A stretch of 64,000 nt of DNA, taken from IMG/VR virus record IMGVR_UViG_3300023174_005338, positions 248,001-312,000 of that record, one strand, 5' to 3'. This document shows, in pieces, positions 9,001 through 45,720 of the stretch. A program made the translations under genes and the position numbers. The notes beneath the pieces are model-generated. The model saw only the letters and a list, made by a program, of their open reading frames with translations. It was not told the DNA's origin and searched no databases. Position 1 is the stretch's first letter; every line of letters starts with the position of its first letter.

Positions 9001-12000
9001 TGTTGTTGTTCAAAGGATTGTTTGACAAATTTATGGGCACTTCATAGAAACCGGCCACGCTGACCTGATCACTCAGTACCGACACTTCGATCACGTCGCC
9101 GGGCGCATAGATAGTTAACAAATTGATTGTGGTGGTATTGGTACCAACCGTGTATTGATAATTGTCAGCGGACTGAAATTGTCCATTGATATAGATTTGT
9201 ACTGCCGGCACTGTTTGATTTTGATTCACTGCTACATCTAACAGCAGTGGATTTCCATCATAGCTAAACTGAAATTGTTGACGCACCAGGCTGGACGTGA
9301 CGGCTGTTTGCCATCCAATTTCTCTCTGAAAGTCAACGCGATTACTGTACTGTCTCACAAAACCTGTGCTCAAAGGCAAGGTTTGGCCACGGTTGTCTAT
9401 GGTATAGTTGAACGAATCTCGGTAGAAATTGTTGTCAAATACAATGTCACCAATGTTGGTAAGACTTAGGTAAGTTAAAGGAAAGCCCAATACCAAATCT
9501 GGATCGGCATTGCCAATGGCATAACTAAACAACGGACTTCCATTGAAATTAGAACTGGGGTATATGGCCTGATTGCCAAAACTTATGCCATTGCTGTCGT
9601 AGATGTCAAACAATGGTGGTTGGTTCACACTGATTTTTTGTTGTGCTTCAATCCACTCTACTCCATCATAGTAGTAAGATAATCCTTGTTCAGTGATACC
9701 ACTGAGTATGACCACAGTTTGGTCGACCAGTGCCGTGGCTATGGGAGTCAACACAATCACAGGTACATCTACTATGGTTGAGTCTTCGGCATTGGTATCG
9801 ATTATCACAAATTGCACCTGATAAACTGTGCGACGCACATCAATGTCTGTGTCTGCGGCAAAAATAATTGTGCTTCCATTGATCAGCGTGTAACCATCGA
9901 TGCTGTAGCCCAATGATCCATTTACATTGCTCAAGGCATCAGTCTGTGTGAAATCAATAATGTCTACTGGTGCCAGCGCCTGTGTGCCAAAATCAAACAA
10001 TCTTGTACCAGCGCGATATTCCAAGATTGGTCTACGGGCACGAAAATTGTTGTTCAAGACCGGAACAGTGTTGTTGTATTCTGCACTGGCAGTGATCACG
10101 TCAATGTGGAACCAACGATTGCTGCGGGTCCAGGCATTGAGATCTGGACTGGCACGGTTGATAGTCAAGTAATCAGGCACAAGGGGTTGATTGAGACTGC
10201 CATCAAAATTTCCAAAGTCATAGGGAGTGGTATCATAGGGAATGGTCAGGCTGTCTGTGTAAGTTTCAGGTGTGACATAGTTGGTCACCGGCAACAGTTG
10301 AATGGCTGTGCCTACCCCTTCCACATAGTATGTTTGATTTTGGTAAGTGGCAGGATATACATTGCCTCTAAATACTACCTTCATGCCGTTGCTGAACACG
10401 ACTCCATTGGGGCTAACGTAGTTGACCGATCCAATGATTTCATCAACATCAATGGTGTCGGACAGTTCCAGATCAATGAGATTAATGCGTCCAAAAATTT
10501 CTGGATCTGTGCCGTCTTGATAAAATAAAACATTTCTGTCGGCTGTCAACAAAGGAATTTGTTCAAAATATCCGGCGGCATTTTTGTACCAGCCGGTGCT
10601 GGAATATTCAGCGCCAAATCCCACTGCAAACTTGTTGTTGAGATCAACATTTTGTACAAATTGCAATGACATATAGGTACCACCACCCGCGGCAGTTAGA
10701 TACTGTATACGCCATACACTGTATTGTGTAGCTTGGTCTGTGATGTAGGTAGTTTGATCAAATGTTGTAGAATCAAAGGATCCTGTGCCGCTTTGTACAT
10801 TGCCCACATTAAGCAAAGGATCAAAGAATGTGGTCTGTTGCCAGCCGCCGGTCACAGGATTTGAATCTTGTGTGATAAATGCTATGGTGCGATTTTGTAA
10901 ATTTGTGATGCCATCAATGCCAGTGGGATTGGCCTCAAAGAATGGTTCTAAGAATTGATTGTTGATTTGATCAAACTGCAACGTGGTAATCAAATCCACC
11001 GTGCCAATGCTGGGCATGTTGAAGTAAAAATTCTGTGCGTCGGCCAAAGGCACATTAAAGGTTACTGTGCCAAGATCTTCACCGTTGTTGGTCACACCCA
11101 GTACATCTCTACTGCTGATGTTGGGAGTGGCAATTACTCGTCCGTCAATACCGGGGTCTGTTTGAATCCAAAATCCAGGACCTGTGCCCGGTGTGCCATC
11201 CACAATGTTGAGCTGGCCGCGCAGATTAAACTGCAGATCATTGGCGTAATACAGTGTGTCAGGAGCATCTTGTGGCACTGTGAATGTAATAAGTCCTGCA
11301 GCGGCTCCATTGTTGAATACGCCTTGGTTGTAGATGTCTGTGGTTCCGAGACTTGGAGCAGTCTTGATATAGAATGCCCAGGGAAAGGACTGAGTGAGAT
11401 TGAACACATAAGTATTGCCTCTGACCAGGGTCAAGGTGGGATTGGCAGAATAATCTATGTTCCAGCTGCTGGTATCATTGTTGGTCACTCGGAAATTTAC
11501 AGTTTCCTTGTTGTTCTGTGCCACATCAAAAGTATAGGTTCCGCCACGCACCAGTGTTATGGCGGGATTGTTGCCGGCCACGCCAGAAAAAGTATAGACT
11601 CCATTGGCTCGGGTTACCGTAAAATCATCGGTCAACGGAACCGAGGTGGCCGATACATCCACTGCCAATGGACCACCGGGCAACCAATAGTATTGTGCAT
11701 AGTTGACAAACTTGTCCAGTTCAACAAATGGATCCCAGGTATAGTAGTCGCTGGTGTACAATCTGTCAGCGTTGTTGGTAAACGCACCTTGTACCTGCAA
11801 GGCATCGTTGATGCCAGGATAGGTTATGGCATCAACTACTTTGCTGGTGTTGGCAGGATCAACTTGCACAACTCCAGGCTCGAGCTGATAGTCAGTGCGA
11901 GTTTTGGTAGGTTCTACCACGTACTGATCATTGGCATTGACTCCAGGACCAATACGTCGACCTATGAATCCTTGGGTCTGTGTGAATCTGGGATTTTGGA

Positions 12001-12094
12001 TCAGCTGATCCAGGGTGGCCGACAAAAATTGCTCGTTGATCGGAGTCTGGAATATTTCTGGTAGGAATTCTACGCTGCGGACTTGGCGGGCCAT
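1..12094 (-). CDS. Giant virion structural protein (baseplate-associated), at least 4,031 aa, C-terminus outside the window
   Basis: ATG at 12094 overlaps the gp6 stop (TAATG) and reads MARQVRSVEFLPEIFQTPINEQFLSATLDQLIQNP. The same frame is open at the window start (…GNNLVRSIKTTIRYDRYEYASDIVEWSYLVASYAEG). The ORF track lists no terminated ORF in this frame, consistent with an uninterrupted frame running off the edge. Composition is T/N/S/V-rich; it follows the baseplate wedge gene. Confidence 0.85.
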   Translation of the reverse strand, partial: MARQVRSVEFLPEIFQTPINEQFLSATLDQLIQNPRFTQTQGFIGRRIGPGVNANDQYVVEPTKTRTDYQLEPGVVQVDPANTSKVVDAITYPGINDALQVQGAFTNNADRLYTSDYYTWDPFVELDKFVNYAQYYWLPGGPLAVDVSATSVPLTDDFTVTRANGVYTFSGVAGNNPAITLVRGGTYTFDVAQNNKETVNFRVTNNDTSSWNIDYSANPTLTLVRGNTYVFNLTQSFPWAFYIKTAPSLGTTDIYNQGVFNNGAAAGLITFTVPQDAPDTLYYANDLQFNLRGQLNIVDGTPGTGPGFWIQTDPGIDGRVIATPNISSRDVLGVTNNGEDLGTVTFNVPLADAQNFYFNMPSIGTVDLITTLQFDQINNQFLEPFFEANPTGIDGITNLQNRTIAFITQDSNPVTGGWQQTTFFDPLLNVGNVQSGTGSFDSTTFDQTTYITDQATQYSVWRIQYLTAAGGGTYMSLQFVQNVDLNNKFAVGFGAEYSSTGWYKNAAGYFEQIPLLTADRNVLFYQDGTDPEIFGRINLIDLELSDTIDVDEIIGSVNYVSPNGVVFSNGMKVVFRGNVYPATYQNQTYYVEGVGTAIQLLPVTNYVTPETYTDSLTIPYDTTPYDFGNFDGSLNQPLVPDYLTINRASPDLNAWTRSNRWFHIDVITASAEYNNTVPVLNNNFRARRPILEYRAGTRLFDFGTQALAPVDIIDFTQTDALSNVNGSLGYSIDGYTLINGSTIIFAADTDIDVRRTVYQVQFVIIDTNAEDSTIVDVPVIVLTPIATALVDQTVVILSGITEQGLSYYYDGVEWIEAQQKISVNQPPLFDIYDSNGISFGNQAIYPSSNFNGSPLFSYAIGNADPDLVLGFPLTYLSLTNIGDIVFDNNFYRDSFNYTIDNRGQTLPLSTGFVRQYSNRVDFQREIGWQTAVTSSLVRQQFQFSYDGNPLLLDVAVNQNQTVPAVQIYINGQFQSADNYQYTVGTNTTTINLLTIYAPGDVIEVSVLSDQVSVAGFYEVPINLSNNPLNNNSDQFTLGTIRNHYTSIAENLIALSGPSIGANNTRDLGNIIPYGLQILQQSSPLTLTGYFMRDANYDIFASLAYNSAEYIKFKSQLLNAVTTFGISDYGNWTVAELLDRSIAQITVGRTNLNPFYWSDMLPTGTVFTSNSYTVNPITINTFNTVQTYDFSTSNYLGLCVYVNNILLTRDTGYVVSTEGPTLTILQTLAVGDVVTINEYADTAGNFVPNTPTKLGLYPKYEPRIFYDTNYVNPTLVIQGHDGSITTAFGDIRDQVLLEFEQRIFSNLKNDGNLPPLVAEDVIPGFFRTTDYSQAEVNQILGESFLSWVGANKLDYTSQTYVADNEFTYNYSQAGNRLDQQPLLGAWRGIYRYFYDTMSPNTTPWEMLGFSEQPEWWTDRYGPTPYTSDNLVLWGDLEAGLVADPVAPYVIPKYRRPGLTSVIPVGSQGELLPPFYSVMGAYNPQGFQKSWQVGDGGPVEASWWMSSSYPFAVMRLLILTRPAEFFSLFADRDLYKYSPEFDQYLYNGRYRIQPQNIEVYGNGVSKASYINWIVDYNQQLGIDSTDALTTDLANLDVRLCYRAASFIASQTLSMYLEKSSPNSENSSLLIPEESYNLLLYKNQPFNRISYSAVIVEVVEGGYTVYGYNATDPYFPTLVSRVTGLQQTLSGGNISVTVPSQYTSKLVQIPYGYTFTNLAGVVDFLLSYGEYLASQGLSFTAQENGYTLNWLQMAQEFLYFANQGWDTGTIINLNPSATQAASFRAGAVVDSIVTYTPENLILDQNRKAFDAKNLIIRRIGNTFTVNPAPGGSQTISYLQLKYTDYEDMIVLDNRTIFNDLIYNPTTAERQSRLRLSAATSTDWNGTLNAQGFILNQNNVVAWKPNTKYTKGDIVLYKNNYWQAANIVQPKSKFEYTDWLKSNYDRIEQGLLQNLATKADQLANSYDTQTANLNNDNDLLAFGLIGFQPRQYMVDLDLDDTSQVNLYQQFIKTKGTTKATDLFTQVDFNPLTAQYRILENWGILVGTYGANANRSWFEVVLNEAQLTSNPGTLQIIQPGESSDANQTVLLDNLWAESYKIPNTDILPTTYVTDSDTALPSAGYVNINDVDITVFNLNNPASIAASLNTVGNGTRIWVAQDNSFDWNIYQCAQIPGRLTQLTDNLNGTSRAQFSTTVDLAIGDLIIIRYFSDAVDGVYRVLSRPSIDTAVIQYEFVNTNQTTITGTGLVFYLQTMRVAQASDIVNLPYATQLVPGATVWVDNDGNGHWQVLEKTNPFAVIDTLTATSPEPNSLFGTSVSQSSSHYALLVGSPAANLGQGAVYTYRLGDTNDYVENTTLSLTATGTVGYGNSVDFGDRTWAVAGASASNSGAGYVTVLYLVPGSNNYIQTQLLVEPNENFAAIGFGTAVQISDNERWLYVSAPGANQLYAYGRVDVPRQSIVYTTDGTTATFVYSDSIEVDSTYPAQLLVTLDNVLLQPGTDYTLSGVVVQLLSTPSAGKTLIIARRQSVQLDFYNYFGVTQNSTTGSGTGAVFTVTNTRGLYNVTLTAPGTAYTVGEQLTISYTQVDPGGSAANNITVTVTQVVSGGITAFTYTGSAVNNTSVFSLTDYLYTADNYDSFTVQVNGVLQRAYIDYTFNTGTLTFLTVPAPQAIIQVESATVGAYWQYTATISANYIDNDAAMGTSLTVDQLGRQILAGAPNDSAPDAEGDVILNAGNVYAFDRGVVKYIISDPSQLTYSIPGSSADPVSVVLNNQYLTNTDQYIDGQFTVSGSDVVLSNSVTLTAGDTLEIETNQFQFVQKFSANTVIDESEFGQSVDICSNSCSVYVGAPLDSSATGVPQAGMVQRQVNQSRIYGITTSTVANPVLTAGDTIRINNQEVAVPNAPENNVAGLIAAINGPTPNIKPNIPNVVATASANATFTGDGSTKIYSIGNMYSSATAYNTVVYVNDVLQTEGVNYTYDNNELSTNYQSIIFVEAPALDSEIVVVSGRMTVSVINSAAAAIFNKLTVLPGLTADDSAIGTAFYDLGFTTYAYTQTIVSPNPTDFAQFGAAVAVNTGAENLVVGSPNGIVYEPTIFDAGETYFDDRSTTFFDSVANSGVVYTYDYLPSANTSLSNPGKFVFGQQVYTTALNTGDRFGSAVNYRSGRLLVGAPGNDLGDSSANYGSVSVLDNANDDAVWQVIHAQQPTVDVNLINSVYSYDKLLNSTQTYFDYIDPLQGKILGVARRNIDYIGAVDPASYNTGTIHNIGTSWGPAHEGEIWWDTNSVRFIDANQDNLIYASTRWGQVFPGSTIDIYQWTASSVPPANYVGPGTPFSTTSYTVHASIDNQGLLQTTYFFWVRGISTVATQARKTLSTTAIASYILNPAGSGLPYIAALTANAIALYNAGSLLSANNTILHVEYDRQIQGGTADVHQEYEFIPDGKPNAFLNANLYRKLLDSLSGTTTTGAVVPDPLLSPGMQYGVQFRPRQSMFENRFNALQNYLGRANTVLAQFPISETRNFNLLNSQEPIPSSVSGAWDFEVANLEVLSYQNLYVVPLGYRYLVTNDASQNGRWTIYQVNAGTQPGQRVLDLVQVQTYDTTLYWNYIDWYRPGYNSSIQPVATVANVAGLQTLNLQTAPVGSSVKVTANGQGKFEIYLRTDLGWDRVVLQDGTIEFSETLWNYALGGYGFDAQVFDGNYFDQAPNTETRYIVRAINEELFVDDLLIERNQSLILLFKFIYSEFGAPEWLIKTSYITVDHVIRGLLPYELFQPDNQTFVLDYLNEVKPYHVQNLQFNLIYDGIDLYAGALTDYDVPAYFNTTLDIPQFVSPVLTPYDYSNSVTQSFVSDASADAEIWLQRPWSDWFNNYGLSVQAITVIDTTTTYSAVPYITIGNEWTASTALALGDQVFYGNNLYTVTVAGTTGTNAPRFTSGSLANGTATLTYSGLRAQATAVLRANGTIATVTVTQPGTSYLTTPSIAVNDTNDSTANYGYGLVPVMGNNLVRSIKTTIRYDRYEYASDIVEWSYLVASYAEG

Positions 12095-15000
12095 TAAATC
12101 ACTCCACTGCCAGGAGCAGTTTGTAAATTGGTGCTGGTCAAGGCCGTGATCACTTCCACATCATTGACCGTGGCGCCATTTACAAATATCTGATTGGGAG
12201 CCGATCTTATTTCATACAAGTCCCCAAAACTTTTTTGTGGGCTCAGTGGCACCAAAACCACACTGCTGACCACATCACCTATGTTTTGATGTATGTACGC
12301 AGCCAACTCGCTGAAATAAAAAGTATCGCCAAAATTCCAATTTTCAATACTGAAGTAGGCATTCATGTTGGCCACTACTAAATTTTTAATGGTGCTGACA
12401 CTGGCTGTGCTACCGGCTGCACGGATCACTTTGACGGTGGCCCGCAGAGCCTGATCTGCTTTTTGTCCAAACAAGGGCTGGAAATCCACGGTGTTAAGGA
12501 TCATGTTGTCCGAGATCATCTTGTATTCTTGTAGTCCTTGATAGACCGTGGTCAGGTCGTTGATGGTGGGTGGTGTTGGTTCTACAACTGTGCCAGTAAC
12601 GTCCTGCAACCAATTGATGTAGGCAGTGTAGTAGGCATTGGTCACAATGTAGATATCTATAATGTTGGTGCTGCCTGGATCAATACGGCTGGTCAACGGA
12701 CTGTTGTGACGATACTGGAAATATAGATCTTGTCGTCCTACCTTGGCCTGATACTCATTGCTCACAGTCAACGTAGGATTGTCTAGACTGTCTACTCCTA
12801 GCACATAAAATGTGCCGGCACTGTAGTCAATGTTTGAAGTGGCACCGGTGGGATTGTAGGCATAAAATACCTGGCCCACAACAAACTGTGACTGCACAGC
12901 CTGTATGGCCGACAAGCTGGGGTAGTTGCTGTTGACAATGCCAGATTCAATCAGCAGATAGCGTTGTAGATTGTCAAAATCCACTGTGGCCTGGAAGAAT
13001 ACCAATTTGTCTGTGGGATCCACTATGGGTGCCACAATGTCATCAAAGAAATCTGGGTTGACTGGTGTGAGATTTCCGGCTCTGGCAAAACTGACCAAGA
13101 CTTGGAAATCATCCACTAGTCCGTCACTGAGCACAGGTTGATCAATGATGGTCAGCACATTGTCCGATCCCATGGGCACCGGCGAGTCAGGACGACTATT
13201 GACCTTGAGCACGTTGATGTAGTCGCGGATCACAGTGCCTGTGCGGCTGTCATAGATGGGATCGCTAGTATAAAAGAAAAATCTGGTCTGTAGCACGCTG
13301 CCAAAATAGTATTCCAAGCTTCTTGATACTACGGTGTAAGTGGCCCCGTCAAAGGTGGCCTGCACCAACCAACTAGCATCACTGTTGGTGCCTGCTGTGC
13401 TTTGTGCGTTGGACAAACTGAAACTGGCATTGGTGGCCAAGTTGCCAGCAGTGATCACATACCAGGTGTTGGTTAGGTTGTTGTAGCCCAGACCAAAATT
13501 TTGATTCAAAGAAATTTGTTCTACTATGCTTTGTTGCACAGTGGTGGGTATGTCCGTGGCAAACACCGGAATGACCTGAGTAGGAATGGCTCTGGTGGGC
13601 ACAAAATTGTTCAGGACCACCGGACCCAGACCATTGGGCAAATTGCCCAGGCCTTCTGCTGTGCCAGATAGGTACACCGCTGTGGGGCTGGCCCAGATGG
13701 TGGTTTTTTCGTCGGGGTTGCTGGGCGTGCCCACTTGCAAACGGTTGTTGGCATCAAAATATTCACCTGTGGGTGCCACAAATTTGACCAGACTACCTTC
13801 AGTAATATATTTGCCATTGTTGCTGGCATAGGTACCAATGGCCACAGGGTTGCCTAGGGCATTTTCAAAATAGCCAGTGGTTTCATTGGCCAGACTGGTG
13901 CTTTGATTCCAGGTGTAGTTCAACACGGACAGATCGGGTCTGGGAAAATTTGCATAATAAAATTGTTGCAGACCATCGCGCAAAGTCAACGGATTGATCT
14001 GATTGATCACAGCATCAGAAATGTCATTGCTGGTCAGCCACGAGAATCGGAATGCAAACAGATCATTGCTTTCATACAAGGCACCATCGCTGGCAAAAAT
14101 ATTTGTGCTGCTGTATTTGCCAGTGGGATCCACCAGATCAAGATAGCGACTGGTTCCAATGCTGGCACGATTTACGGCCGAGCTTTTGAGAATACTGGTG
14201 TATTGTGTGAACGGGAAATTGGTATAGTCCTCGCCGTTGACCATCCTGTTCTGAGTATAGTATTGTGCAGGTGCACGCTGTTTAATTTCTTGTATGGTTT
14301 CTCGTGCCTGTGCATTGGTCACAGGTTCTGTGATGCCGCAGGTAAATGTTATGGTTTCAATCTGTCCTGTGCGACTCACATAGCTGATAGGCACGCTGAC
14401 ACTCTGCATCTCCACAGGATTGATAATGTAGGTCAGACCATTTGAAGCACGCACATAGGTACGGAAGGTGCCCACTGGTATAGTGGCAAATATGCCGTCA
14501 CCAAAGTTTAGTGTGATTTGATCATTGGTGCGACTGGCCACACTGTAGATATCTCTGGTGCCGGGAGCCAGTTGTTCCACAGCAGCCGCATACACACTCT
14601 GTACCTTTTCCCAGTAGTTGGAAACGTTGCCTAGATTGTCCAACTGATACAGCCATACGTCGGTGTTATTGATGCCTTCGATGTTGATGGCCACTGCACG
14701 ATTTGTGATGCGTTCGGCTAGGTTGAAATCTTGATTCTGCAACACACCTTGTTTGAACAGGAAAAAGAAACCAGTGTTGCCGCTGAGAAACCCTTGCTGA
14801 TCATTGCGGAACAACACATTGAATTGTCCATTGGGCAAGGGTGGAGGTTCATACACAAAGTCTGTTCCTGCTGATGTGGCATTGACCACTTCAAAAGGCA
14901 TGTTGACTGTGTCAACTGTGGCAGTGTAAGGTATCACGGGCAAGAATCCAGGCACAAGATTTATTGTGTATTCCTGTGTGTCTACTCCCAGTATGTCCTG

Positions 15001-15528
15001 ACGATTGCCTGGATTTCCAAACTGTTGTGTATTGACCAAGGCCGCATTGAGTATGACCGTGAACTGTTCTTGCCAGTCAAGATTGGTAGGATCTGCCCAG
15101 TTGACCGTGATGTTGGCCAGATTGATGCCGTTGTAGTCGGTGACGTTTTCTGTAGTGCTCACAGAAAATACCTTGAGATACCCGGATGCTTCGGTGTTGC
15201 GATTGGGACTATAACTGACCAAGTTTGCCAGCCGTACCACACTGTCTCGCCGTTCAGCTGTGTCTAGGTAATTTTCTCTGGTGTTGAGGTCTGTGCGAAA
15301 CGCCAGACTCTGCCCCATGAATGCCATGACATCCAACAAGGCAATAAATTCTGAACTTTCAATGTAGTCATTGAAGGTTTCTGGATAATACAGGCGCAAA
15401 TAGTCCACAAAACTCTTGCGCAGGGTTTCAAAATCATAGCTTTGGAAGTCGGCTTCCTGGTAGGTTTGATAGATCCTTTTCCAGTCTTCTACCCCAAAAA
15501 TTGCTGTTTGTCTTGACGTTGTGGCCAT
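12094..15528 (-). CDS. gp6: Baseplate wedge subunit, T4 gp6-like (1144 aa)
   Basis: N-terminal DFQSYDFETLRKSFVDYL…FNDYIESSEFIALLDVMAF…RENYLDTAERRDSVVRLANLVSY, plus ETIQEIKQRAPAQYYTQNRMVNGEDY, typical of gp6/baseplate-J proteins; adjacent to gp25. Confidence 0.85.
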   Translation of the reverse strand: MATTSRQTAIFGVEDWKRIYQTYQEADFQSYDFETLRKSFVDYLRLYYPETFNDYIESSEFIALLDVMAFMGQSLAFRTDLNTRENYLDTAERRDSVVRLANLVSYSPNRNTEASGYLKVFSVSTTENVTDYNGINLANITVNWADPTNLDWQEQFTVILNAALVNTQQFGNPGNRQDILGVDTQEYTINLVPGFLPVIPYTATVDTVNMPFEVVNATSAGTDFVYEPPPLPNGQFNVLFRNDQQGFLSGNTGFFFLFKQGVLQNQDFNLAERITNRAVAINIEGINNTDVWLYQLDNLGNVSNYWEKVQSVYAAAVEQLAPGTRDIYSVASRTNDQITLNFGDGIFATIPVGTFRTYVRASNGLTYIINPVEMQSVSVPISYVSRTGQIETITFTCGITEPVTNAQARETIQEIKQRAPAQYYTQNRMVNGEDYTNFPFTQYTSILKSSAVNRASIGTSRYLDLVDPTGKYSSTNIFASDGALYESNDLFAFRFSWLTSNDISDAVINQINPLTLRDGLQQFYYANFPRPDLSVLNYTWNQSTSLANETTGYFENALGNPVAIGTYASNNGKYITEGSLVKFVAPTGEYFDANNRLQVGTPSNPDEKTTIWASPTAVYLSGTAEGLGNLPNGLGPVVLNNFVPTRAIPTQVIPVFATDIPTTVQQSIVEQISLNQNFGLGYNNLTNTWYVITAGNLATNASFSLSNAQSTAGTNSDASWLVQATFDGATYTVVSRSLEYYFGSVLQTRFFFYTSDPIYDSRTGTVIRDYINVLKVNSRPDSPVPMGSDNVLTIIDQPVLSDGLVDDFQVLVSFARAGNLTPVNPDFFDDIVAPIVDPTDKLVFFQATVDFDNLQRYLLIESGIVNSNYPSLSAIQAVQSQFVVGQVFYAYNPTGATSNIDYSAGTFYVLGVDSLDNPTLTVSNEYQAKVGRQDLYFQYRHNSPLTSRIDPGSTNIIDIYIVTNAYYTAYINWLQDVTGTVVEPTPPTINDLTTVYQGLQEYKMISDNMILNTVDFQPLFGQKADQALRATVKVIRAAGSTASVSTIKNLVVANMNAYFSIENWNFGDTFYFSELAAYIHQNIGDVVSSVVLVPLSPQKSFGDLYEIRSAPNQIFVNGATVNDVEVITALTSTNLQTAPGSGVI

Positions 15529-23634: not shown

Positions 23635-24537
23635 GTGTCAACCACACCCACAAGGACCCCAGCAAAAACCAACTATCTCAACAACAGAGATATCCTAAAA
23701 CAAATACACCTCAGCAAAAATAGCTACTGTACATACCTAGATCCAGTGACAGATCACCAGTATGACATCATCTTGCCCACAGTGGAACGAATCAATCAAA
23801 GAACCACAGCCGAGGCACGCAGAAACCGTGCTGAACGTATCAAGCGAGAAACTGGGCAGGTCATAGATCCCAAAAAAATCCCCAACACAGACTTGGTGTT
23901 CCGCATAACCTGCTGGGAACACATACCCATGGCGCCTAAAAAAGTGCCCAAGAGTTCGGCCAAGAAAAACAAAATTGAAGACATATTTGAACTGGACGTG
24001 TTGGAGGAAGACGATCCCTTGGCCGAGCTGATCGAAGAGCCTGTGCTGGATCCCAAACATGTGAGATTGAATTTTCCTCCGTTTTATCACTACCGCATAG
24101 ATAACAACAAACAACCGTACATCGTGGGCAAAAGCCACTGGAAGGGTGACCTGGAGCAGGGAGAGTTCAGCAAGGATCATGGCACCATGACCCGTACCTT
24201 GGCCACCATGTTTATCAAGCTGTGCGAACGCTATGCCACCCGATCAAACTGGCGTGGCTACACCTACAACGAGGAAATGCGTGGTCAGGCCTTACTACAG
24301 TTAAGCCAGATTGGCCTGCAGTTTGACGAGTCAAAAAGCCAAAATCCATTTGCTTATTACACCGCGGCCATTACCAACAGTTTCACACGTATCCTAAACT
24401 TGGAAAAGAAAAATCAAAACATCCGCGATGACATGTTGGAACAGGCCGGACTCAATCCATCATGGACTCGTCAGAATGCCGGTCGTAAGAATCCAGCACA
24501 GGCACCCGGAGAGGTTGTAATTGTCACAGAAGAATAG
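23635..24537 (+). CDS. gp55: Sigma factor for late transcription, gp55-like
   Basis: NYLNNRDIL N-terminus; LCERYATRSNWRGYTYNEEMRGQALLQL…FDESKSQNPFAYYTAAITNSFTRILNLEKK; upstream of gp47 as in T4-like phages. Confidence 0.85.
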   Translation: MSTTPTRTPAKTNYLNNRDILKQIHLSKNSYCTYLDPVTDHQYDIILPTVERINQRTTAEARRNRAERIKRETGQVIDPKKIPNTDLVFRITCWEHIPMAPKKVPKSSAKKNKIEDIFELDVLEEDDPLAELIEEPVLDPKHVRLNFPPFYHYRIDNNKQPYIVGKSHWKGDLEQGEFSKDHGTMTRTLATMFIKLCERYATRSNWRGYTYNEEMRGQALLQLSQIGLQFDESKSQNPFAYYTAAITNSFTRILNLEKKNQNIRDDMLEQAGLNPSWTRQNAGRKNPAQAPGEVVIVTEE

Positions 24538-29916: not shown

Positions 29917-31680
29917 ATGATTCAAATAAAAAATCTCACAGTAAAAAACTTTATGAGCGTGGGCAACGCCACGCAAGGCATCGACTTTGATCGACGCGAC
30001 TTGACACTTGTGTTGGGCGAGAACTTGGATCTTGGTGGCGACGGAAGCCGCAACGGCACAGGTAAAACTACTATAATCAATGCTCTTAGCTACAGCTTGT
30101 ATGGGCAAGCATTAAGTAACATCCGCAAGGACAACTTAGTCAACAAAACCAACAACAAAAACATGTTGGTCAGTTTGGATTTCAGTGTGGACGGCAAAGA
30201 TTACCGGATTGAACGAGGCCGTAAACCCAACCTGCTGAGATTCTTTGTAAACAATCAAGAGCAAGTGGTCACAGACGAAGCACAAGGCGACAGCCGAGAA
30301 ACACAGGATGCCATTGAACATACCTTGGGCCTCAGTCACGACATGTTCAAACACATTCTGGCACTCAACACTTACACAGAACCGTTTCTGAGTCTCAAAG
30401 CCACAGATCAAAGAACCATCATTGAACAACTCCTGGGCATAACCATGCTGAGCGAGCGTGCCGATCGAATCAAAGAACACAACAGATCCACCAAAGAAGC
30501 CATACAGCAAGAAGAATTCCGTATTCGAGCTGTTCAAGAAGCCAATAAAAGGATAGAAGAACAGATTGAGGCTTTACGACGTAGACAGACATTATGGGTG
30601 ACTAAACATGAAGAAGAGATTACCAAACTCGAAACCGCGCTCGAAGAACTCAAAAAGATTGACATTGAAGCCGAGATTGCGGCCCACAAGGCGCACAAAG
30701 TATGGGATCAGAAGCGCAAGGACCTTAACGACCTGGCTGGACAGATCTCCCGCACGAAGCTTGATAAGGACCGCGAGAACAAAAGCATTGAGAAGCTTGG
30801 CAAGGAGATTGCGACACTTGAAGATCACACATGTCACACTTGCGGGCAGGCTTTCCACGACCATAAGCACCAACAGGTCCTGGCGGGTAAGCAGGCTGAT
30901 CTGGCAAGAGCGCGAGAAGCGTGCCAAGAACATACACAGCTCCTTTCAGAACTCGAGACTGCCCACACAGCCTTGGGCACGTTAGGGCGACCACCTGCTA
31001 TGTTCTATGATAGTGAAGAGGATGCCATACAACATCGTAGCAGCATGGCTGCCTTGCAAACTCAATTGACAAACAAACAGGCCGAAACAGATCCCTACGG
31101 CGAGCAGATAGCGGACATGCAAGGTCAGGCTTTGCAGGTAGTAAGCTATGACACACTCAATGAGCTGACCAGACTTCAGGAACATCAAGACTTCTTGCTC
31201 AAACTTTTGACCAGCAAGGATTCATTCATACGCAAAAAAATCATTGAACAGAATTTGAGTTATTTGAATGCCAGACTCACACACTACCTGGATAGGATTG
31301 GCCTGCCGCATACCGTGGTGTTCCAGAACGATTTGACTGTGAGCATCGAGGAGCTGGGTCGTGAGCTGGACTTTGACAATTTGAGTCGTGGCGAACGCAA
31401 CAGATTGATCTTGAGCATGAGCTGGGCCTTTCGTGATGTGTTTGAAAGCCTATACCAGCCCATCAATGTGCTGTTCATAGACGAAATGATTGATTCGGGC
31501 CTGGACACACAGGGTGTAGAAAATGCTCTTGCGTTGCTGAAGCACATGAGCCGCGAACGGCACAAGAGTATTTGGTTGGTCAGCCACAGAGATGAGCTAG
31601 CCGGAAGAGTTGAAAACATACTCCGAGTGGTCAAAGAAGGCGGCTTTACCAGTTACAACACGGATGTAGAAATTGCGTAG
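29917..31680 (+). CDS. gp46: Recombination endonuclease ATPase subunit (Rad50/SbcC-like)
   Basis: KNFMSVGN, Walker A NGTGKT, zinc hook CHTC, signature LSRGE, Walker B LFIDE, H-loop VSH. Confidence 0.92.
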   Translation: MIQIKNLTVKNFMSVGNATQGIDFDRRDLTLVLGENLDLGGDGSRNGTGKTTIINALSYSLYGQALSNIRKDNLVNKTNNKNMLVSLDFSVDGKDYRIERGRKPNLLRFFVNNQEQVVTDEAQGDSRETQDAIEHTLGLSHDMFKHILALNTYTEPFLSLKATDQRTIIEQLLGITMLSERADRIKEHNRSTKEAIQQEEFRIRAVQEANKRIEEQIEALRRRQTLWVTKHEEEITKLETALEELKKIDIEAEIAAHKAHKVWDQKRKDLNDLAGQISRTKLDKDRENKSIEKLGKEIATLEDHTCHTCGQAFHDHKHQQVLAGKQADLARAREACQEHTQLLSELETAHTALGTLGRPPAMFYDSEEDAIQHRSSMAALQTQLTNKQAETDPYGEQIADMQGQALQVVSYDTLNELTRLQEHQDFLLKLLTSKDSFIRKKIIEQNLSYLNARLTHYLDRIGLPHTVVFQNDLTVSIEELGRELDFDNLSRGERNRLILSMSWAFRDVFESLYQPINVLFIDEMIDSGLDTQGVENALALLKHMSRERHKSIWLVSHRDELAGRVENILRVVKEGGFTSYNTDVEIA

Positions 31681-32539
31681 AATACGAGTCTTACACATTG
31701 AACCCACCGACGTTTGTCAGGCTGCATGCCCGTTGTGTGCCCGAGAGACTGACCCAAACTTTAATAAAAGTTTAAAGCATCATCTCAGAGTAGAGCACAT
31801 ACAAAAACATTTTTCAGAACAAGTAATTTCCAAACTGGATAAAATGTTCATGTGTGGCAATTATGGTGATCCGGCTGCAGGCTACTATACCATGGACATC
31901 TACAACCACTTTAGAAAAGTCAATCCAGAAATTGTGTTGGGTATGAACACCAATGGTGCTGTGCAAAGCACGTTCTTTTGGCATGCGTTGGGACGATTGT
32001 TCAATCAGCCCAAAGATTATTGTGTGTTTAGCATAGACGGATTAGAGGATACCAATCACGTTTATCGTAAAAATGTCAATTGGGCCAAGCTAATGAGCAA
32101 CGTTCAAGCCTACATTGCCGCAGGTGGAAGTGCCCATTGGGACATGCTGGTGTACAAACACAATCAACATCAAGTGGATGCTTGCCAGCAACTGGCTCGT
32201 GACATGGGATTCAAGTGGTTCCGTGCCAAGGTCAGCAAGCGTGGATTCACTGATCATTTAGAATTTCCCATCGGGTGGCAACCGCCTGCGGTCAAGGCGG
32301 GGCCCATCAAATGCCATGTGATTAATGAAAAAAGCATGTACATTGATGCGCAAGGTCGTGCCAGTGCCTGTTGCTGGCTTGGTGCCACGCAACAAGATTT
32401 TGTCAAAGATGATTTGGCAACTGTAAAATTAACTTGGAAAACAGACACACCCAATCCGGTGTGTGTCAGTGCTTGTTCCACAAACAAAAATAAAACCGTA
32501 TTCCAAGACCAATGGCAACGCGAGGTACAACTGTGTTAG
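31673..32539 (+). CDS. Radical SAM protein with a C-terminal Cys-rich (Twitch/SPASM-like) region
   Basis: CQAACPLC (CxxxCxxC), CGNYGDP, NTNG, FSIDG; C-terminal KC…ACCW…CVSAC; TTG start overlaps the gp46 end. Confidence 0.85.
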   Translation: MRRIRVLHIEPTDVCQAACPLCARETDPNFNKSLKHHLRVEHIQKHFSEQVISKLDKMFMCGNYGDPAAGYYTMDIYNHFRKVNPEIVLGMNTNGAVQSTFFWHALGRLFNQPKDYCVFSIDGLEDTNHVYRKNVNWAKLMSNVQAYIAAGGSAHWDMLVYKHNQHQVDACQQLARDMGFKWFRAKVSKRGFTDHLEFPIGWQPPAVKAGPIKCHVINEKSMYIDAQGRASACCWLGATQQDFVKDDLATVKLTWKTDTPNPVCVSACSTNKNKTVFQDQWQREVQLC

Positions 32540-33543
32540 CCACCTGGCATTTTCATATCGAAATCAGTTCAAAGTGTACCCTGCGTTGCCCACGCTGTGC
32601 CAGACAAGAGGTTCCCGACAGTTTAGTAAACACTGAACTGGATTTAGAATTTTTTAAAAGAAACTTTACCGCAGAGTTTGTTCTTGACAATGTAGAAAAG
32701 ATCACATTTTGTGGTGACGACGGTGATCCTATCTATGCTCACGACCTTATACCAGTGATTCAATACATCAAGTCAATCAAACCTGTTGAGATTGTAGTTG
32801 TCACAAATGGATCACACAAGAAACCAGAATGGTGGCGTGAACTTGGTGGCGTGCTTAGTGAGCAAGATACTGTACACTTTAGCATCGACGGTTGGGACTA
32901 CCCAAGCAACAATCTGTATCGTGTCAACAGTGATTTCAACAGTATTGTCGACGGAATCACTGCACTACGATCAACCTCTGAGTGCCACCTTGTGTGGGCT
33001 GCCATTGTCTTTGGGTTCAATGAACACCAACTGGGCGCTATGAAAAATCATGCACGTTTGCTAGATATGGATGTATTTCAACTTACCAAGAGCACCAAGT
33101 TTGGCTCCGTTTATCTCTCCTACGGTCCAATCGATGAGCTAGAGCCCAGCCGGCCGTTTGTCAGCAGTTCACACAGATTTGAGAGAGATGTTACACCGAT
33201 AAGCTCGCGTGGACTCAATTCACAGACAAACACCAAGAACATACAATTATACAAATCTGCTGTAGAGATCAACGGTGTAAAACCCCTGTGTGAAATTGGC
33301 AACAAAGGACTTTATATTGACGCCCAAGGTAGATTATTCCCTTGCTGTTGGGTAGCAAACCGCTACAGTCACAATTCAGAATGGAAAGCTATTGCTAACA
33401 AATTTGATTTGAATCGTCGCACACTGGCCGACGCTGTAACTGACGATTTTTGGTCAACAACATTTAAAACCTTTGGGTGGCAAGAGTGCCAGACTAAGTG
33501 TGTAGCGAGCAGGGTAAATGAAAAATATGCAACTGAGTGGTAA
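32533..33543 (+). CDS. Second radical SAM protein, paralogous to the upstream one
   Basis: CTLRCPRC, FCGDDGDP, VTNGS, FSIDG; C-terminal LC…PCCW…CQTKC. Probable GTG start at 32533; the track uses the ATG at 32512. Confidence 0.85.
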   Translation: MLATWHFHIEISSKCTLRCPRCARQEVPDSLVNTELDLEFFKRNFTAEFVLDNVEKITFCGDDGDPIYAHDLIPVIQYIKSIKPVEIVVVTNGSHKKPEWWRELGGVLSEQDTVHFSIDGWDYPSNNLYRVNSDFNSIVDGITALRSTSECHLVWAAIVFGFNEHQLGAMKNHARLLDMDVFQLTKSTKFGSVYLSYGPIDELEPSRPFVSSSHRFERDVTPISSRGLNSQTNTKNIQLYKSAVEINGVKPLCEIGNKGLYIDAQGRLFPCCWVANRYSHNSEWKAIANKFDLNRRTLADAVTDDFWSTTFKTFGWQECQTKCVASRVNEKYATEW

Positions 33544-33561
33544 AATGATAAATTATAGTCC

Positions 33562-33990
33562 ATGGTATGGCTGTACGAAAACACTCCGATTGAACAACTA
33601 CCCGAAGACTGTGTTGGTTTTGTTTATTTGATCACAAATAACGTTACCGGCAGAAAGTACATTGGAAAAAAATTAGCAAAGTTTAGCAAGACCTCATATC
33701 GAGTAGTAAAATTAAAGAACGGCTACAAGAAACGTAAAAAGATAAGAAGCAAAATAGATTCAGACTGGCAACTATACTATGGCAGCAACGATCAACTCAA
33801 CCGAGACATTGCAGAGCTGGGCTCAGACAACTTCACAAGAGAAATATTGTTTTATTGCCGATCAAAAGCAGAATGCAGTTATGTTGAAGCACGCGAACAA
33901 TTCAATCATAAAGTATTGGAATCAGATGACTACTACAATGGACAGATTGTTTGCCGTATACACGGAAGTCATATAAAAAACAAAATTTAA
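33562..33990 (+). CDS. Small GIY-YIG-family nuclease
   Basis: GFVYLITNNVTGRKYIGKK, YYGS, FTREIL…E…YYN; 142 aa; single catalytic domain. Confidence 0.75.
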   Translation: MVWLYENTPIEQLPEDCVGFVYLITNNVTGRKYIGKKLAKFSKTSYRVVKLKNGYKKRKKIRSKIDSDWQLYYGSNDQLNRDIAELGSDNFTREILFYCRSKAECSYVEAREQFNHKVLESDDYYNGQIVCRIHGSHIKNKI

Positions 33991-35659: not shown

Positions 35660-35896
35660 TTAAAAGAAAGGCAGGCCCGTCTTCTTTGTGGTTTCTAAGT
35701 TTTCTTTGATCAAGTTGCTGATAGTGTTGCGCTCTTGTACACTGAGATGTAGAGCTTGATCGTAGCTGATGCCGCCACGCATGTACCAGGCCACTTTGAT
35801 CGCTTCTTGTCTTATGTCCTGTGTTTCTTTGTCCATCTGATCCACGACTTTGGAAATCTGGTCAGAGTCCAAGACTAAGAGGCGGGCACGAAAAAA
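35660..35896 (-). CDS. Tail/baseplate assembly chaperone C-terminal frame (probable -1 frameshift extension of the upstream ORF)
   Basis: The frame is open across the slippery site: FFRARLLVLDSDQISKVVDQMDKETQDIRQEAIKVAWYMRGGISYDQALHLSVQERNTI…; internal ATG at 35836. Confidence 0.6.
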   Translation of the reverse strand, partial: FFRARLLVLDSDQISKVVDQMDKETQDIRQEAIKVAWYMRGGISYDQALHLSVQERNTISNLIKENLETTKKTGLPFF

Positions 35897-36708
35897 CTGG
35901 CCATGTCCAAGGTCAACACCTGCTCGTACTGGTGTTTGCAGGCCGTGCATTCCAGGTTGAGTGGTTGAAGTTCGCTTTGTTCACGCAGTCGCAACACATG
36001 ATCACGTATCTGATTGAACAGATCTCGATCGCAGTTTTTCAGGAATTCTTCAATGAAAGCTGGTTCTCGGACCAGGGCCTGTGGAGTTTTAATTGTGACA
36101 ATGCTGATGGCCAGGCTTCGCACAGTGATTTCAGTCAGCTGTCTGAATGCTTGGTTAAGGGCAGCCATCTTGTCGGCTTCAGATATTGTGCTGTCAGGTA
36201 TGACCTGCAACAGTTTTTGTTGTTCGTACTGCAATGCACTGTTGTCATTGAGATTTTTATAGCTCAACGGACGGAAATAGATCTCCAAATCGCCGTGTGC
36301 AATGTGTGCCGCGTAGTCAGGCGCTCGCAGGGCATCCAACATGGTTCTTAAATCTATGGTGCGTTCTGACGTGTCGTTACAGGCCGGGCACGTGGTTGCA
36401 AACTCCATGTCATGTCCGTAGCTGGCTATGCGTATGGCTATAAGGATGGTGTCTAGATCAATACCGGGCACTGCCCAGGCATCTCGGATGTTTGGCACAC
36501 AGCTCTGTATCACGTTGACAGTGGCCTGTCCGTTGAACAAGGCATCTGGTGTGCGATAGGTAATTTCGTCTATGGCAGTCATGGGATACACTGGCAATTC
36601 ACCATTGGCTGGCATGTTTAACGTGCCAGCAGGATAGTTCTGCCCGCCACTGGGCAACTTTATGTAGATGCTGGGTTGTCGGAAATACTGACTTAAAGGA
36701 TTGCTCAT
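35875..36708 (-). CDS. Baseplate hub assembly / tail assembly chaperone (T4 gp26/gp51-like)
   Basis: YIKLPSGG…VYPMTAIDEI…DLDTILIAIRIASYG…CPAC…CTAC; ends …SFFVPAS; adjacent to the tape measure gene. Confidence 0.7.
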   Translation of the reverse strand: MSNPLSQYFRQPSIYIKLPSGGQNYPAGTLNMPANGELPVYPMTAIDEITYRTPDALFNGQATVNVIQSCVPNIRDAWAVPGIDLDTILIAIRIASYGHDMEFATTCPACNDTSERTIDLRTMLDALRAPDYAAHIAHGDLEIYFRPLSYKNLNDNSALQYEQQKLLQVIPDSTISEADKMAALNQAFRQLTEITVRSLAISIVTIKTPQALVREPAFIEEFLKNCDRDLFNQIRDHVLRLREQSELQPLNLECTACKHQYEQVLTLDMASFFVPAS

Positions 36709-36742
36709 TTTACCACCATAAATATTGTGCTAATACTTATAC

Positions 36743-38821
36743 GTGGAAAACATGGACCCAAATGAATTACAAGCCGTATCCGAAGCCCTAGAACAACTGC
36801 GCCAAGGCGGTACTATTTCGGCCGAAACCTTGGCCAAACTGGGCGGAACCACGCAGAGTGTCAACAAGGCCCTAGAAGGTTACACCAAACGACTGCTGGG
36901 CGCGACCTCGGCCATAGGTGGCATGGCCAAGCAAGTGGCCGACGGCGAAGGCAGTTTCAAATCTCTAGGTGGTGCTATTTCGGGATTGACCGGCGTGGTT
37001 GGAAAACTGGCCAGTGCCATACCCTTGGTTGGTGGTGCAGCCAAGGCTCTGGCCGAAGGTGTAGGCGAAGCGGCCAAGTTTGTGCTGGATCAGTTGGATG
37101 TCATGGCCAAGAACTACCAAACTCTGGGCGACGCCAGCGCCACTGCTGCTGACGGGGTAGACGGATTATTACGCCAGTTCAATCAGATGGGCAACTACAG
37201 CCTACCGGCTTTTGCCAAAGCAGTAAAGGCCAACACTCAAGGACTGGCAGCACTTAGTGGAACAGCTGCCCTGGGTGCCGAAGAGCTCAGCAAAGTGTCC
37301 GGAGTATTGACCACCGGCGACACTGCCAGAAAGTTTTTAAAACTGGGCATAGGATTAGATGCTGTGGGAGATGCCACAGCACAGTACCTAGCTGACAGTG
37401 CCAGATATGGCATTACTCAAGGCGCTACTACGGAACAATTGACCAAAAAAACACAAGACTACATTGTAGAAGTCGACAAGATAGCCCGACTCACAGGACA
37501 GACACGAGAACAACAACAACGAGAAGCACAGAAAAGTCTAGTGGATGCTAGATTCCGCGCCAAGCTGGCAGAAATGACAGCCAATGGACAAAAGGATCAA
37601 GCAGACCAGTTGAGATTGTACGTAGACGGGCTGGGCGGAGCTGCTGGAGATGCTGCCCGTGCCTTGGTCACAGGAATTCCGTTGACCAAAGAGGCTGCAG
37701 AAGCCAACTTGTTTACCGGTGATGCCCTTAGACAAAATACACAAGATATCATAGCAGGAAACAAAAGATCTGTGCAGGCCATAGCCGACACTGAAGAAGC
37801 CATGTCAAGAGGAGCAGACACATTTGGCACTCTAGCTCAATACGGCAAAGATTTAGGCGGCCTCACTGTGCAGAGCTTGGATGCCAAGGCCAGAATACAA
37901 AACAAAACATCCTTGCAACGTCAGCAAGAAATTTCAGACGCCCAAGAAAAAACAGCCAATGCAGCAGGCAAGGCCACAGAAGAGTTTACAGACGCACAGT
38001 TGGCCACAGCCGGCGCCAGCAAAAATCTACAAAGCCTGGGCTTTAGTCTAGCTACCTATGCCGTGCCCGCAGTCAACAAGTTTGCCTCGGCATTGGAATC
38101 AGTTACCGGCAGCATGAACAAGTATCTTGGAGTAGGCGGCACCAAATCAACTCCTGCTGGTGTGGATCGTGGTGCTGCCGGCGGACCCAGAGCTGCCATG
38201 GGCGGTGTGGTTCCGGGTAGATCGGTAACCATTGGTGATCAAACTAGAACTGGAGGCGACCGCAACTGGCGCAATAACAATCCAGGCAATATTGAATATG
38301 GACCATTTGCCATCAAATATGGTGCCATTGGCAGCGACGGCAGATTTGCCATATTCCCCACAGAAGAACAAGGTCGCATGGCACAAGATGCCTTGCTCAA
38401 AAGCAAAAACTATGCCAACTTGAGCCTGGCAGATGCTGTCAAACGTTATGCTCCATCCAACGAAAACGACCCCAAATCATATGCTCGCCAGATAATGGCT
38501 CAGACTGGCATTGACCAAAACATGCGATATGCTGATCTCACTCCAGAACAACAAAGTCGAGTATTGGATGCCATGAAACGCATCGAAGGCGGACGAGCCG
38601 GTACAATCAGTGGACCTTCGGGCAATTATTCCAGTACCATGTCTGGGGTCAATCCACCATCGGCCGGTGTCACCACACAAGCACAAGCTGATGCCAATTC
38701 TGAAGAAGTTAGGTCCGTTAATCCGCTGAACAAAATGGTCACTCTGTTGACCGAATTGGTAAGAACCGAGCAACAGGCCACGGCCTATCAACGACAAATA
38801 TTACAGAATAGCAAGGCATAG
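36743..38821 (+). CDS. Tape-measure-like protein with a C-terminal lysozyme-like domain
   Basis: A/G/L-rich helical body; C-terminal RNNNPGNIEY…FAIFPTEEQG…YAPSNENDPKSY. Confidence 0.65.
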   Translation: MENMDPNELQAVSEALEQLRQGGTISAETLAKLGGTTQSVNKALEGYTKRLLGATSAIGGMAKQVADGEGSFKSLGGAISGLTGVVGKLASAIPLVGGAAKALAEGVGEAAKFVLDQLDVMAKNYQTLGDASATAADGVDGLLRQFNQMGNYSLPAFAKAVKANTQGLAALSGTAALGAEELSKVSGVLTTGDTARKFLKLGIGLDAVGDATAQYLADSARYGITQGATTEQLTKKTQDYIVEVDKIARLTGQTREQQQREAQKSLVDARFRAKLAEMTANGQKDQADQLRLYVDGLGGAAGDAARALVTGIPLTKEAAEANLFTGDALRQNTQDIIAGNKRSVQAIADTEEAMSRGADTFGTLAQYGKDLGGLTVQSLDAKARIQNKTSLQRQQEISDAQEKTANAAGKATEEFTDAQLATAGASKNLQSLGFSLATYAVPAVNKFASALESVTGSMNKYLGVGGTKSTPAGVDRGAAGGPRAAMGGVVPGRSVTIGDQTRTGGDRNWRNNNPGNIEYGPFAIKYGAIGSDGRFAIFPTEEQGRMAQDALLKSKNYANLSLADAVKRYAPSNENDPKSYARQIMAQTGIDQNMRYADLTPEQQSRVLDAMKRIEGGRAGTISGPSGNYSSTMSGVNPPSAGVTTQAQADANSEEVRSVNPLNKMVTLLTELVRTEQQATAYQRQILQNSKA

Positions 38822-44914: not shown

Positions 44915-44961
44915 GTTGATTACAAGTTTAGGTAAAAGTGAGGTTTATCATAAATAATATT

Positions 44962-45720
44962 ATGAACAAATACAAAACTTGGTATAACAACATTACTGAA
45001 AACGCCAAAACTCGTATATCGGATGGATATACGGAACGGCATCACATTATCCCTCGAAGCCTAGGCGGATCTGACAGTAAAGAAAACTTAGTTGATCTCA
45101 CAGCCAGAGAACATTTCATATGTCATTGGTTACTGATTAAAATGCATACTGGCGAATCAAAAGCTAAAATGATTTATGCTCTAAATGGTATGAAACGAAA
45201 TGGCAGATTTAACGAAAGATATGAAACCAAAATAACAAGTAGAGTTTATGAAAAGCTCAAACAAGAATTTTCTCTTATACACTCTGCCAACATGAAAGGT
45301 CGCACTGCCCACAATAAAGGTGTTCCTGCCACAGAAGAACAAAAAGAAAAAAATAGGCTGGCCGCAAAAGGTAGGAAGATGAGTCCAGAATCAATCGCGA
45401 AAGGTGTAGCCAAGCGCCGCGGACAAAAAAGAACAGAAGAGCAAAAGGCAAAAATTGCAAAATCAGTAAAAGAAGCACTTGCTAAAAACCCAAGAGGCCC
45501 AATGAGCGATGAACATAAGTTAAAAAGGTCATTAGCATCATTGGGTAAACCAAAGCCAGCTGGGCATACTGAAAGAAGACTTGCGACTCTTGCCAAGCAG
45601 TTGGCAGAAGGCACGCATTATAGTCAACAAAAAAAGACCTGTCCACACTGCGGAGTAGTTGCAAGTAAAGGTCCTTACACAAGGTATCACGGACCTCACT
45701 GCCAGGCCCTCAAACCTTAA
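44962..45720 (+). CDS. Free-standing HNH homing endonuclease with NUMOD3-like basic repeats
   Basis: YTERHHIIPRSLGGSDSKENLVDLTAREHFICHWLL; basic repeats (MSPESIAK, RTEEQKAKI, MSDEHKLK); C-terminal CPHC; AT-rich. ATG at 44962 preferred. Confidence 0.85.
   Translation: MNKYKTWYNNITENAKTRISDGYTERHHIIPRSLGGSDSKENLVDLTAREHFICHWLLIKMHTGESKAKMIYALNGMKRNGRFNERYETKITSRVYEKLKQEFSLIHSANMKGRTAHNKGVPATEEQKEKNRLAAKGRKMSPESIAKGVAKRRGQKRTEEQKAKIAKSVKEALAKNPRGPMSDEHKLKRSLASLGKPKPAGHTERRLATLAKQLAEGTHYSQQKKTCPHCGVVASKGPYTRYHGPHCQALKP

Follow-up and report, generated by a model that had tools for sequence, protein, structure and literature searches.

Does a phage gene that stops a few codons after a run of six T residues encode one protein, or does a fraction of ribosomes slip back one base there and produce a second, longer form? 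This question is raised by a 277-aa ORF on the minus strand (36708-35875) of the 64,000-nt window analysed here, which covers bases 248001-312000 of the 337,119-bp virus record IMGVR_UViG_3300023174_005338. The record carries direct terminal repeats and comes from a jumbo phage, and the genes in the window are T4-like, including a gp20-type portal, prohead protease and major head protein, a gp6-like wedge protein, a gp5-like hub/lysozyme protein, a gp55-like late sigma factor and gp46/47-like nucleases. A first-pass annotation had proposed a programmed -1 frameshift in a tail assembly chaperone, in a gp26-like, T4-related context and divergent from the tape measure gene. Our comparative analysis strongly supports the frameshift, although in the absence of protein or RNA evidence the slippage itself remains inferred.

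The slippery site and its gene

On the minus strand the ORF ends ATG GCC AGT TTT TTC GTG CCC GCC TCT TAG, with the TAG at 35877-35875. The AGT codon begins at 35898, 810 nt from the start and hence divisible by 3, so that the heptamer T TTT TTC (35896-35890; third base of Ser271, Phe272 and Phe273) lies in X XXY YYZ phase, 12 nt before the end of the ORF. From C35890, the -1 frame reads RARLLVLDSDQISK...WYMRGG...GLPFF for 76 codons to TAA at 35662-35660 (extension 35890-35660, minus strand), and the ATG of the next gene follows three bases later. The shifted product would be 273 + 76 = 349 aa. The first-pass reading of the site and of its open frame was therefore correct. The heptamer alone is not unusual, since TTTTTTC occurs 15 times in the window against 12.9 +/- 3.6 expected; however, of all 36 T6C/T7 sites on both strands, only this one combines a long upstream zero frame (278 codons), a nearby zero-frame stop and a long open -1 frame. 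A search for the T4 late-promoter consensus TATAAATA gave 1 match in the window against 0.98 expected and was not informative.

The zero-frame protein belongs to the T4 gp26/gp51 family (Pfam PF12322 T4_baseplate), with 56.1 bits against a cut-off of 24.5 (E 5.3e-15), residues 60-273 being aligned to profile positions 42-218 of 219, and the match ends exactly at the TTC slip codon. It was also assigned to phrog_150, 'baseplate hub'. The AlphaFold2 model (pLDDT 82) predicts a folded domain with residues 268-277 disordered, which places the slip site in a linker. This model matches BFVD predicted structures of 'Baseplate hub assembly protein, bacteriophage T4-like' (E 2e-23, TM 0.90/0.88; 67 matches at E <= 0.001), whereas searches against the PDB gave no meaningful match (Foldseek best E 0.46; VIA-align only helical hairpins of about 55 residues at Z <= 7.5), and no structure of this family has been solved. 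The extension is modelled as three helices (pLDDT 85), but it hit no family in Pfam, PHROGs or NCBIfam, and a fold search of its model against BFVD gave nothing (best E 1.6).

Conservation of the heptamer and the -1 frame

While a DNA-level search of the region against cultured phages found nothing, protein-level searches were productive. A scan of IMG/VR returned 58 loci at 97-50% identity, and every locus that reaches the end of the gene has TTTTTTC at the same place, a zero-frame stop 12 nt later and a 76-codon -1 extension ending in a GLPFF-type motif. Among the 48 distinct sequences of this clade, the codon preceding the run changes its amino acid (AGT, ACT, AAT, CAT), yet its third base is always T, and Phe-Phe is always spelt TTT TTC. 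The mean entropy by codon position in the -1 phase is 0.68/0.41/1.33 over codons 6-76, and 0.93/0.66/1.38 over codons 6-18, which lie outside the overlap and upstream of the only conserved ATG (Met19 of the extension, 35836-35834). The extension is as conserved as the main domain (74% against 71% mean column identity), and in two loci the -1 frame is closed only two codons upstream of the heptamer. No conserved RNA structure was found around the site in this clade (RNAalifold 0.0; single-sequence z-score -1.1), whereas stable hairpins start 5-18 nt after the heptamer in S-SSM7, XacN1, Xoo-sp13, Atu_ph07 and 121Q (z -2.8 to -4.7). The window's clade does have an invariant CGCCTC (35884-35879, minus strand) 5-11 nt downstream, in the overlap between the heptamer and the zero-frame stop, with zero entropy in 48 distinct sequences even at synonymous sites of the -1 frame, and its role is unexplained. 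The heptamer class U_UU.U_UU.Y is among the highly efficient ones measured in E. coli and is used by IS elements (PMC4066793).

Similar observations were made in distant phages. A tblastn search found 96 cultured phage records, all jumbo phages at 29-32% identity, and nearly all alignments end at residue 273. The eight that we read (Phosso, Paride, Atu_ph07, Xoo-sp13, XacN1, 121Q, Munch and Kaldavass) all have an in-phase T TTT TTC (T TTT TTT in the two Xanthomonas phages) and a -1 extension of 70-79 aa. The zero-frame tail after the heptamer differs in length and sequence between clades (1 to 11 residues), while the -1 start, R-x-x-L-L, is shared. A further 86 of 86 cyanophage- and Aeh1-type loci carry the in-phase heptamer (83 T6C, 3 T7) with extensions of 58-69 aa, and so do S-CAM1, where the extension is an unannotated gap, and nt-1. 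An exception is Cygsa01, an intermediate case with one gene, no full heptamer (C ATT TTC, which keeps only the U_UUC tetramer) and a small ORF with its own ATG overlapping the stop. A search for homologous proteins listed only 277-290 aa near-relatives among its best 120 of at least 7544 hits, and thus could not show in-frame fused forms.

Relation to T4 gp26 and gp51

T4 gene 26 has no slippery site; it ends GAG TTC TTT GAG TTA CTA TAA and runs directly into gene 25. T4 gp51, encoded divergently next door, is PF12322 over residues 1-201 (E 3.9e-52), followed by a 48-aa in-frame tail. In cyanophage S-SSM7, the gp26 gene ends GAT TTT TTC GCC TAA, and the ORF annotated as 'gp51 baseplate hub assembly catalyst' is the -1 frame right behind it. 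In Aeh1, the same heptamer is followed by a 58-codon -1 frame with no ATG and no annotation, which nevertheless matches the gp51 profile phrog_634 at E 1.1e-13; the S-SSM7 extension hits this profile at 7.9e-26 and that of Cygsa01 at 9e-12. Earlier work by Sullivan et al. had noted that cyanophage and marine vibriophage gp51 lacks the first 200 or so residues and that gp51 is 'missing only in Aeh1' (PMC3037559), and the frameshift explains both. A tblastn search with the S-SSM7 extension finds 547 phage records, with matches starting at the first residue after the heptamer. Alignment of the trans-frame products with T4-type gp51 proteins puts the in-frame gp51 sequence straight across the junction, ...DVF|KLLVNPDEIF... 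against ...SFF|RARLLVLDSDQI... and ...DFF|RLTLVNDSVYDLF.... For the window itself, however, the extension (76 aa against 48 aa in T4) is linked to the gp51 tail only at profile level: HMMER finds no hit to phrog_634, and hhalign gives P 3.7e-4 and 2.1e-3 over 29-31 columns centred on the S/P-x-x-E-R motif, against 0.42 for a reversed control. We consider this homology probable, not certain.

PF12322 copy number is linked to the heptamer. The family occurs once in the window's genome, in a related 344-kb genome, in Aeh1 with two of its kin and in S-SSM7, as well as in Cygsa01, whereas it occurs twice in T4, KFS-EC and avDM3, which lack the heptamer. In a maximum-likelihood tree, the T4-type gp26 and gp51 sequences form one clade (99/96) nested beside the single-copy Aeh1 and nt-1, and Aeh1, nt-1, the cyanophages and the jumbo-phage clade (100/100) all lie outside it. 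The tree is rooted at its midpoint only; with any root outside the T4-type clade, the duplication is derived and the frameshift arrangement is older.

Two inferred products and their probable role

Taken together, we conclude with high confidence, though from sequence comparison alone, that the single gp26/gp51-family gene of this phage yields two products. Most ribosomes would read through T TTT TTC, add four residues and stop, giving the 277-aa gp26-like short form, whereas a fraction would slip back one base, both tRNA-Phe re-pairing on UUU, and continue in the -1 frame to give a 349-aa long form with a small helical C-terminal tail, the probable counterpart of T4 gp51. An unlikely alternative is that the extension is a separate small gene, translated from its own start or by termination-reinitiation, with the heptamer merely encoding a conserved Phe-Phe. 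Met19 is nearly invariant in the window's clade, Phosso, Atu_ph07, 121Q, cyanophages and nt-1 have an ATG 1-4 codons after the heptamer where annotators call a small gene, so a separate small protein could also be made there, and Cygsa01 fits this layout. Nevertheless, Phe-Phe could be spelt four ways and the preceding third base is free, yet T6C or T7 is invariant in about 144 sequences; the 18 codons before Met19 are conserved as protein, with coding periodicity; the ATG at 35836, which the first-pass annotation had named as the rival start, is replaced in the clade sequence L041 and has no counterpart at that position in Phosso or Paride; Aeh1 and its kin, S-CAM1 and Paride have no ATG at or near the start of the extension; and T4-type gp51 carries the tail in frame. 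Transcriptional slippage, in which RNA polymerase adds one U in the T6 run, is about as unlikely. It would give the identical product (...SFFRAR...), and U7 is depleted from E. coli genes, possibly because homopolymer runs can cause slippage (PMC4066793). However, the run of 6-7 T is probably shorter than those usually used for programmed transcriptional slippage, its codon phase is strictly conserved across very distant lineages, which matters for tRNA re-pairing and not for polymerase slippage, and several lineages have a stable hairpin 5-6 nt downstream, the spacing typical of ribosomal stimulators. A sequencing error or a recently broken gene, although the T6 run is a classic site for indels and T4-type gp51 shows that an unbroken fused form can exist, is contradicted by the same two-frame layout in more than 140 independent assemblies and finished genomes of cultured phages, all with a zero-frame stop 3-33 nt after the run and none in these lineages fused in frame.

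A close parallel is lambda gpG/gpGT and the conserved -1 frameshift of tail assembly chaperone genes in long-tailed phages (Levin 1993; Xu, Hendrix and Duda 2004, as cited in PMC5009743), in which a -1 slip on an X XXY YYZ heptamer a few codons before the stop gives a short abundant form and a rarer C-terminally extended form. The chaperone label of the first-pass annotation holds in the functional sense, since T4 gp26 and gp51 are listed as hub assembly chaperones and gp51 is needed for assembly but absent from the finished particle (PMC3004832). By sequence and fold, however, the protein is not a member of the lambda G / Phage_TAC families: no Phage_TAC Pfam or PHROG chaperone hit was found, and it is a PF12322 protein of about 270 aa with a CxxC...CxxC pattern rather than about 100-140 aa. 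Its heptamer is T TTT TTC and not G GGA AAG. A gp51-like long form of gp26 is the sharper description. The gene is also divergent from the probable tape measure gene instead of lying between the tube and tape measure genes on the same strand; portal and head genes follow that neighbour, and no tube gene is adjacent. The neighbour (36743-38821, plus strand) encodes 692 aa from GTG 36743, or more likely 689 aa from ATG 36752, and has an Ala/Gly-rich helical sequence with a lysin-like domain near residues 500-640 (phrog_873 and PDB 9vvp/7q47 matches at 502-660). Its nearest language-model cluster is 'Phage tail tape measure protein' (0.94), its length ranges from 628 to 977 aa within the clade, and its 121Q homologue is annotated as a virion structural protein. 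Its identity as the tape measure, which the first-pass annotation had assumed, is probable but not proven; no Pfam or NCBIfam tape-measure model hits it and BLASTP shows no similarity to T4 gp29. By analogy with lambda G/GT and the T4 genetics of genes 26 and 51, both forms probably act as non-virion chaperones that bring the tape measure and hub proteins into the baseplate hub, with the tail of the long form supplying an extra contact.

The paralogy of gp26 and gp51 is implicit in Pfam, whereas no report linking either protein to frameshifting was found in the largely open-access literature searched, so that prior description cannot be excluded. The site is missed or mis-called in hundreds of phage genomes. 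In the eighteen GenBank records with the signal that we opened, the tail is either an unannotated gap or a small separate gene (about 55-66 aa in cyanophages and vibriophages, starting at an ATG a few codons after the heptamer), and none is annotated as a frameshift. It is somewhat more likely than not that the ancestral hub chaperone of the whole T4-like superfamily (jumbo phages, cyanophages, pelagiphages, vibriophages, Aeh1) is a G/GT-style frameshift pair encoded by one PF12322 gene, that 'gp51' of most of these phages is never a free protein but the trans-frame tail of gp26, and that T4 genes 26 and 51 are a later duplication that hard-wired the two products. This would make gp26/gp51 the missing tape-measure/hub chaperone system of T4-type tails, arrived at with an unrelated fold. 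The finding explains why cyanophage and vibriophage gp51 is only about a fifth of the T4 length and why Aeh1 seemed to lack this near-core gene, and it gives a natural case of a recoding signal being replaced by gene duplication. For T4 biology, it places gp26 and gp51, essential hub factors of unclear mechanism, in the same logic as lambda G/GT, namely a fixed ratio of a short and an extended chaperone.

Tails of gp51 in phages Aeh1 and S-CAM1

Aeromonas phage Aeh1 was reported to lack gp51, whereas its gp51 tail is in fact encoded as a 58-codon −1 frame with no ATG, located behind T TTT TTC at the end of gene 26 (positions 2199-2378 of locus L070, AY266303.2; also loci L154-L157). This frame hits phrog_634 at E 1.1e-13 and is not annotated in the record. 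In Synechococcus phage S-CAM1 (locus L161, NC_020837.1; 895-1086), the 184-nt gap after the gp26-like CDS has no annotated gene, yet it holds the −1 extension behind the heptamer. Several other cyanophage records also list only 'baseplate hub' under the tblastn match.

Genomic context of the gp26-like gene

The probable tape measure protein encoded next to the gp26-like gene (36743-38821, plus strand) has an embedded lysin-like domain at residues ~500-640, with matches to PDB 9vvp 'Gp29' (E 4e-8) and to the endolysin 7q47. Across the clade, its length ranges from 628 to 977 aa and its identity falls to about 20%, while the neighbouring gp26-like gene stays at 55-65%. The short divergent intergenic region between the two genes (36709-36751) has near-matches to the T4 late promoter TATAAATA on each strand, namely TATAAGTA at 36741-36734 on the minus strand and CATAAATA on the plus strand. 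The genome encodes a gp55-like late sigma factor (23635-24534). The exact consensus is not enriched in the window.

Other features were noted elsewhere in the window. A giant ORF of more than 4031 aa (2-12094, minus strand) runs off the window's start and lies directly upstream of a 1144-aa gp6-like baseplate wedge protein (12097-15528). Two homing-endonuclease-like ORFs were identified, at 33562-33987 (plus strand; phrog_7363/314) and at 44938-45717 (plus strand; phrog_655), the second of which lies right after the major head protein gene. In addition, two adjacent, overlapping ORFs (31673-33540, plus strand) with radical-SAM-like PHROG matches (phrog_21308) are placed after the gp46-like nuclease gene.

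The gp26-like fold beyond T4-like phages and the second product of T4 gene 26

BFVD matches to the structural model of the gp26-like protein (m397ac2ddcc5b) indicate that the predicted gp26-like fold is found well beyond T4-like phages. Examples include Bacillus SP-15 and BCD7, Campylobacter CP220, Ralstonia phiRSL1 and Ackermannviridae, and also much longer proteins (384-974 aa) in Erwinia, Klebsiella and Aeromonas jumbo phages. In T4 (locus L004, NC_000866.4), gene 26 is itself annotated with a second product, 26′ (95 aa; 3803-4090, minus strand), made from an internal start. T4 thus also makes two proteins from this gene, by a different route.
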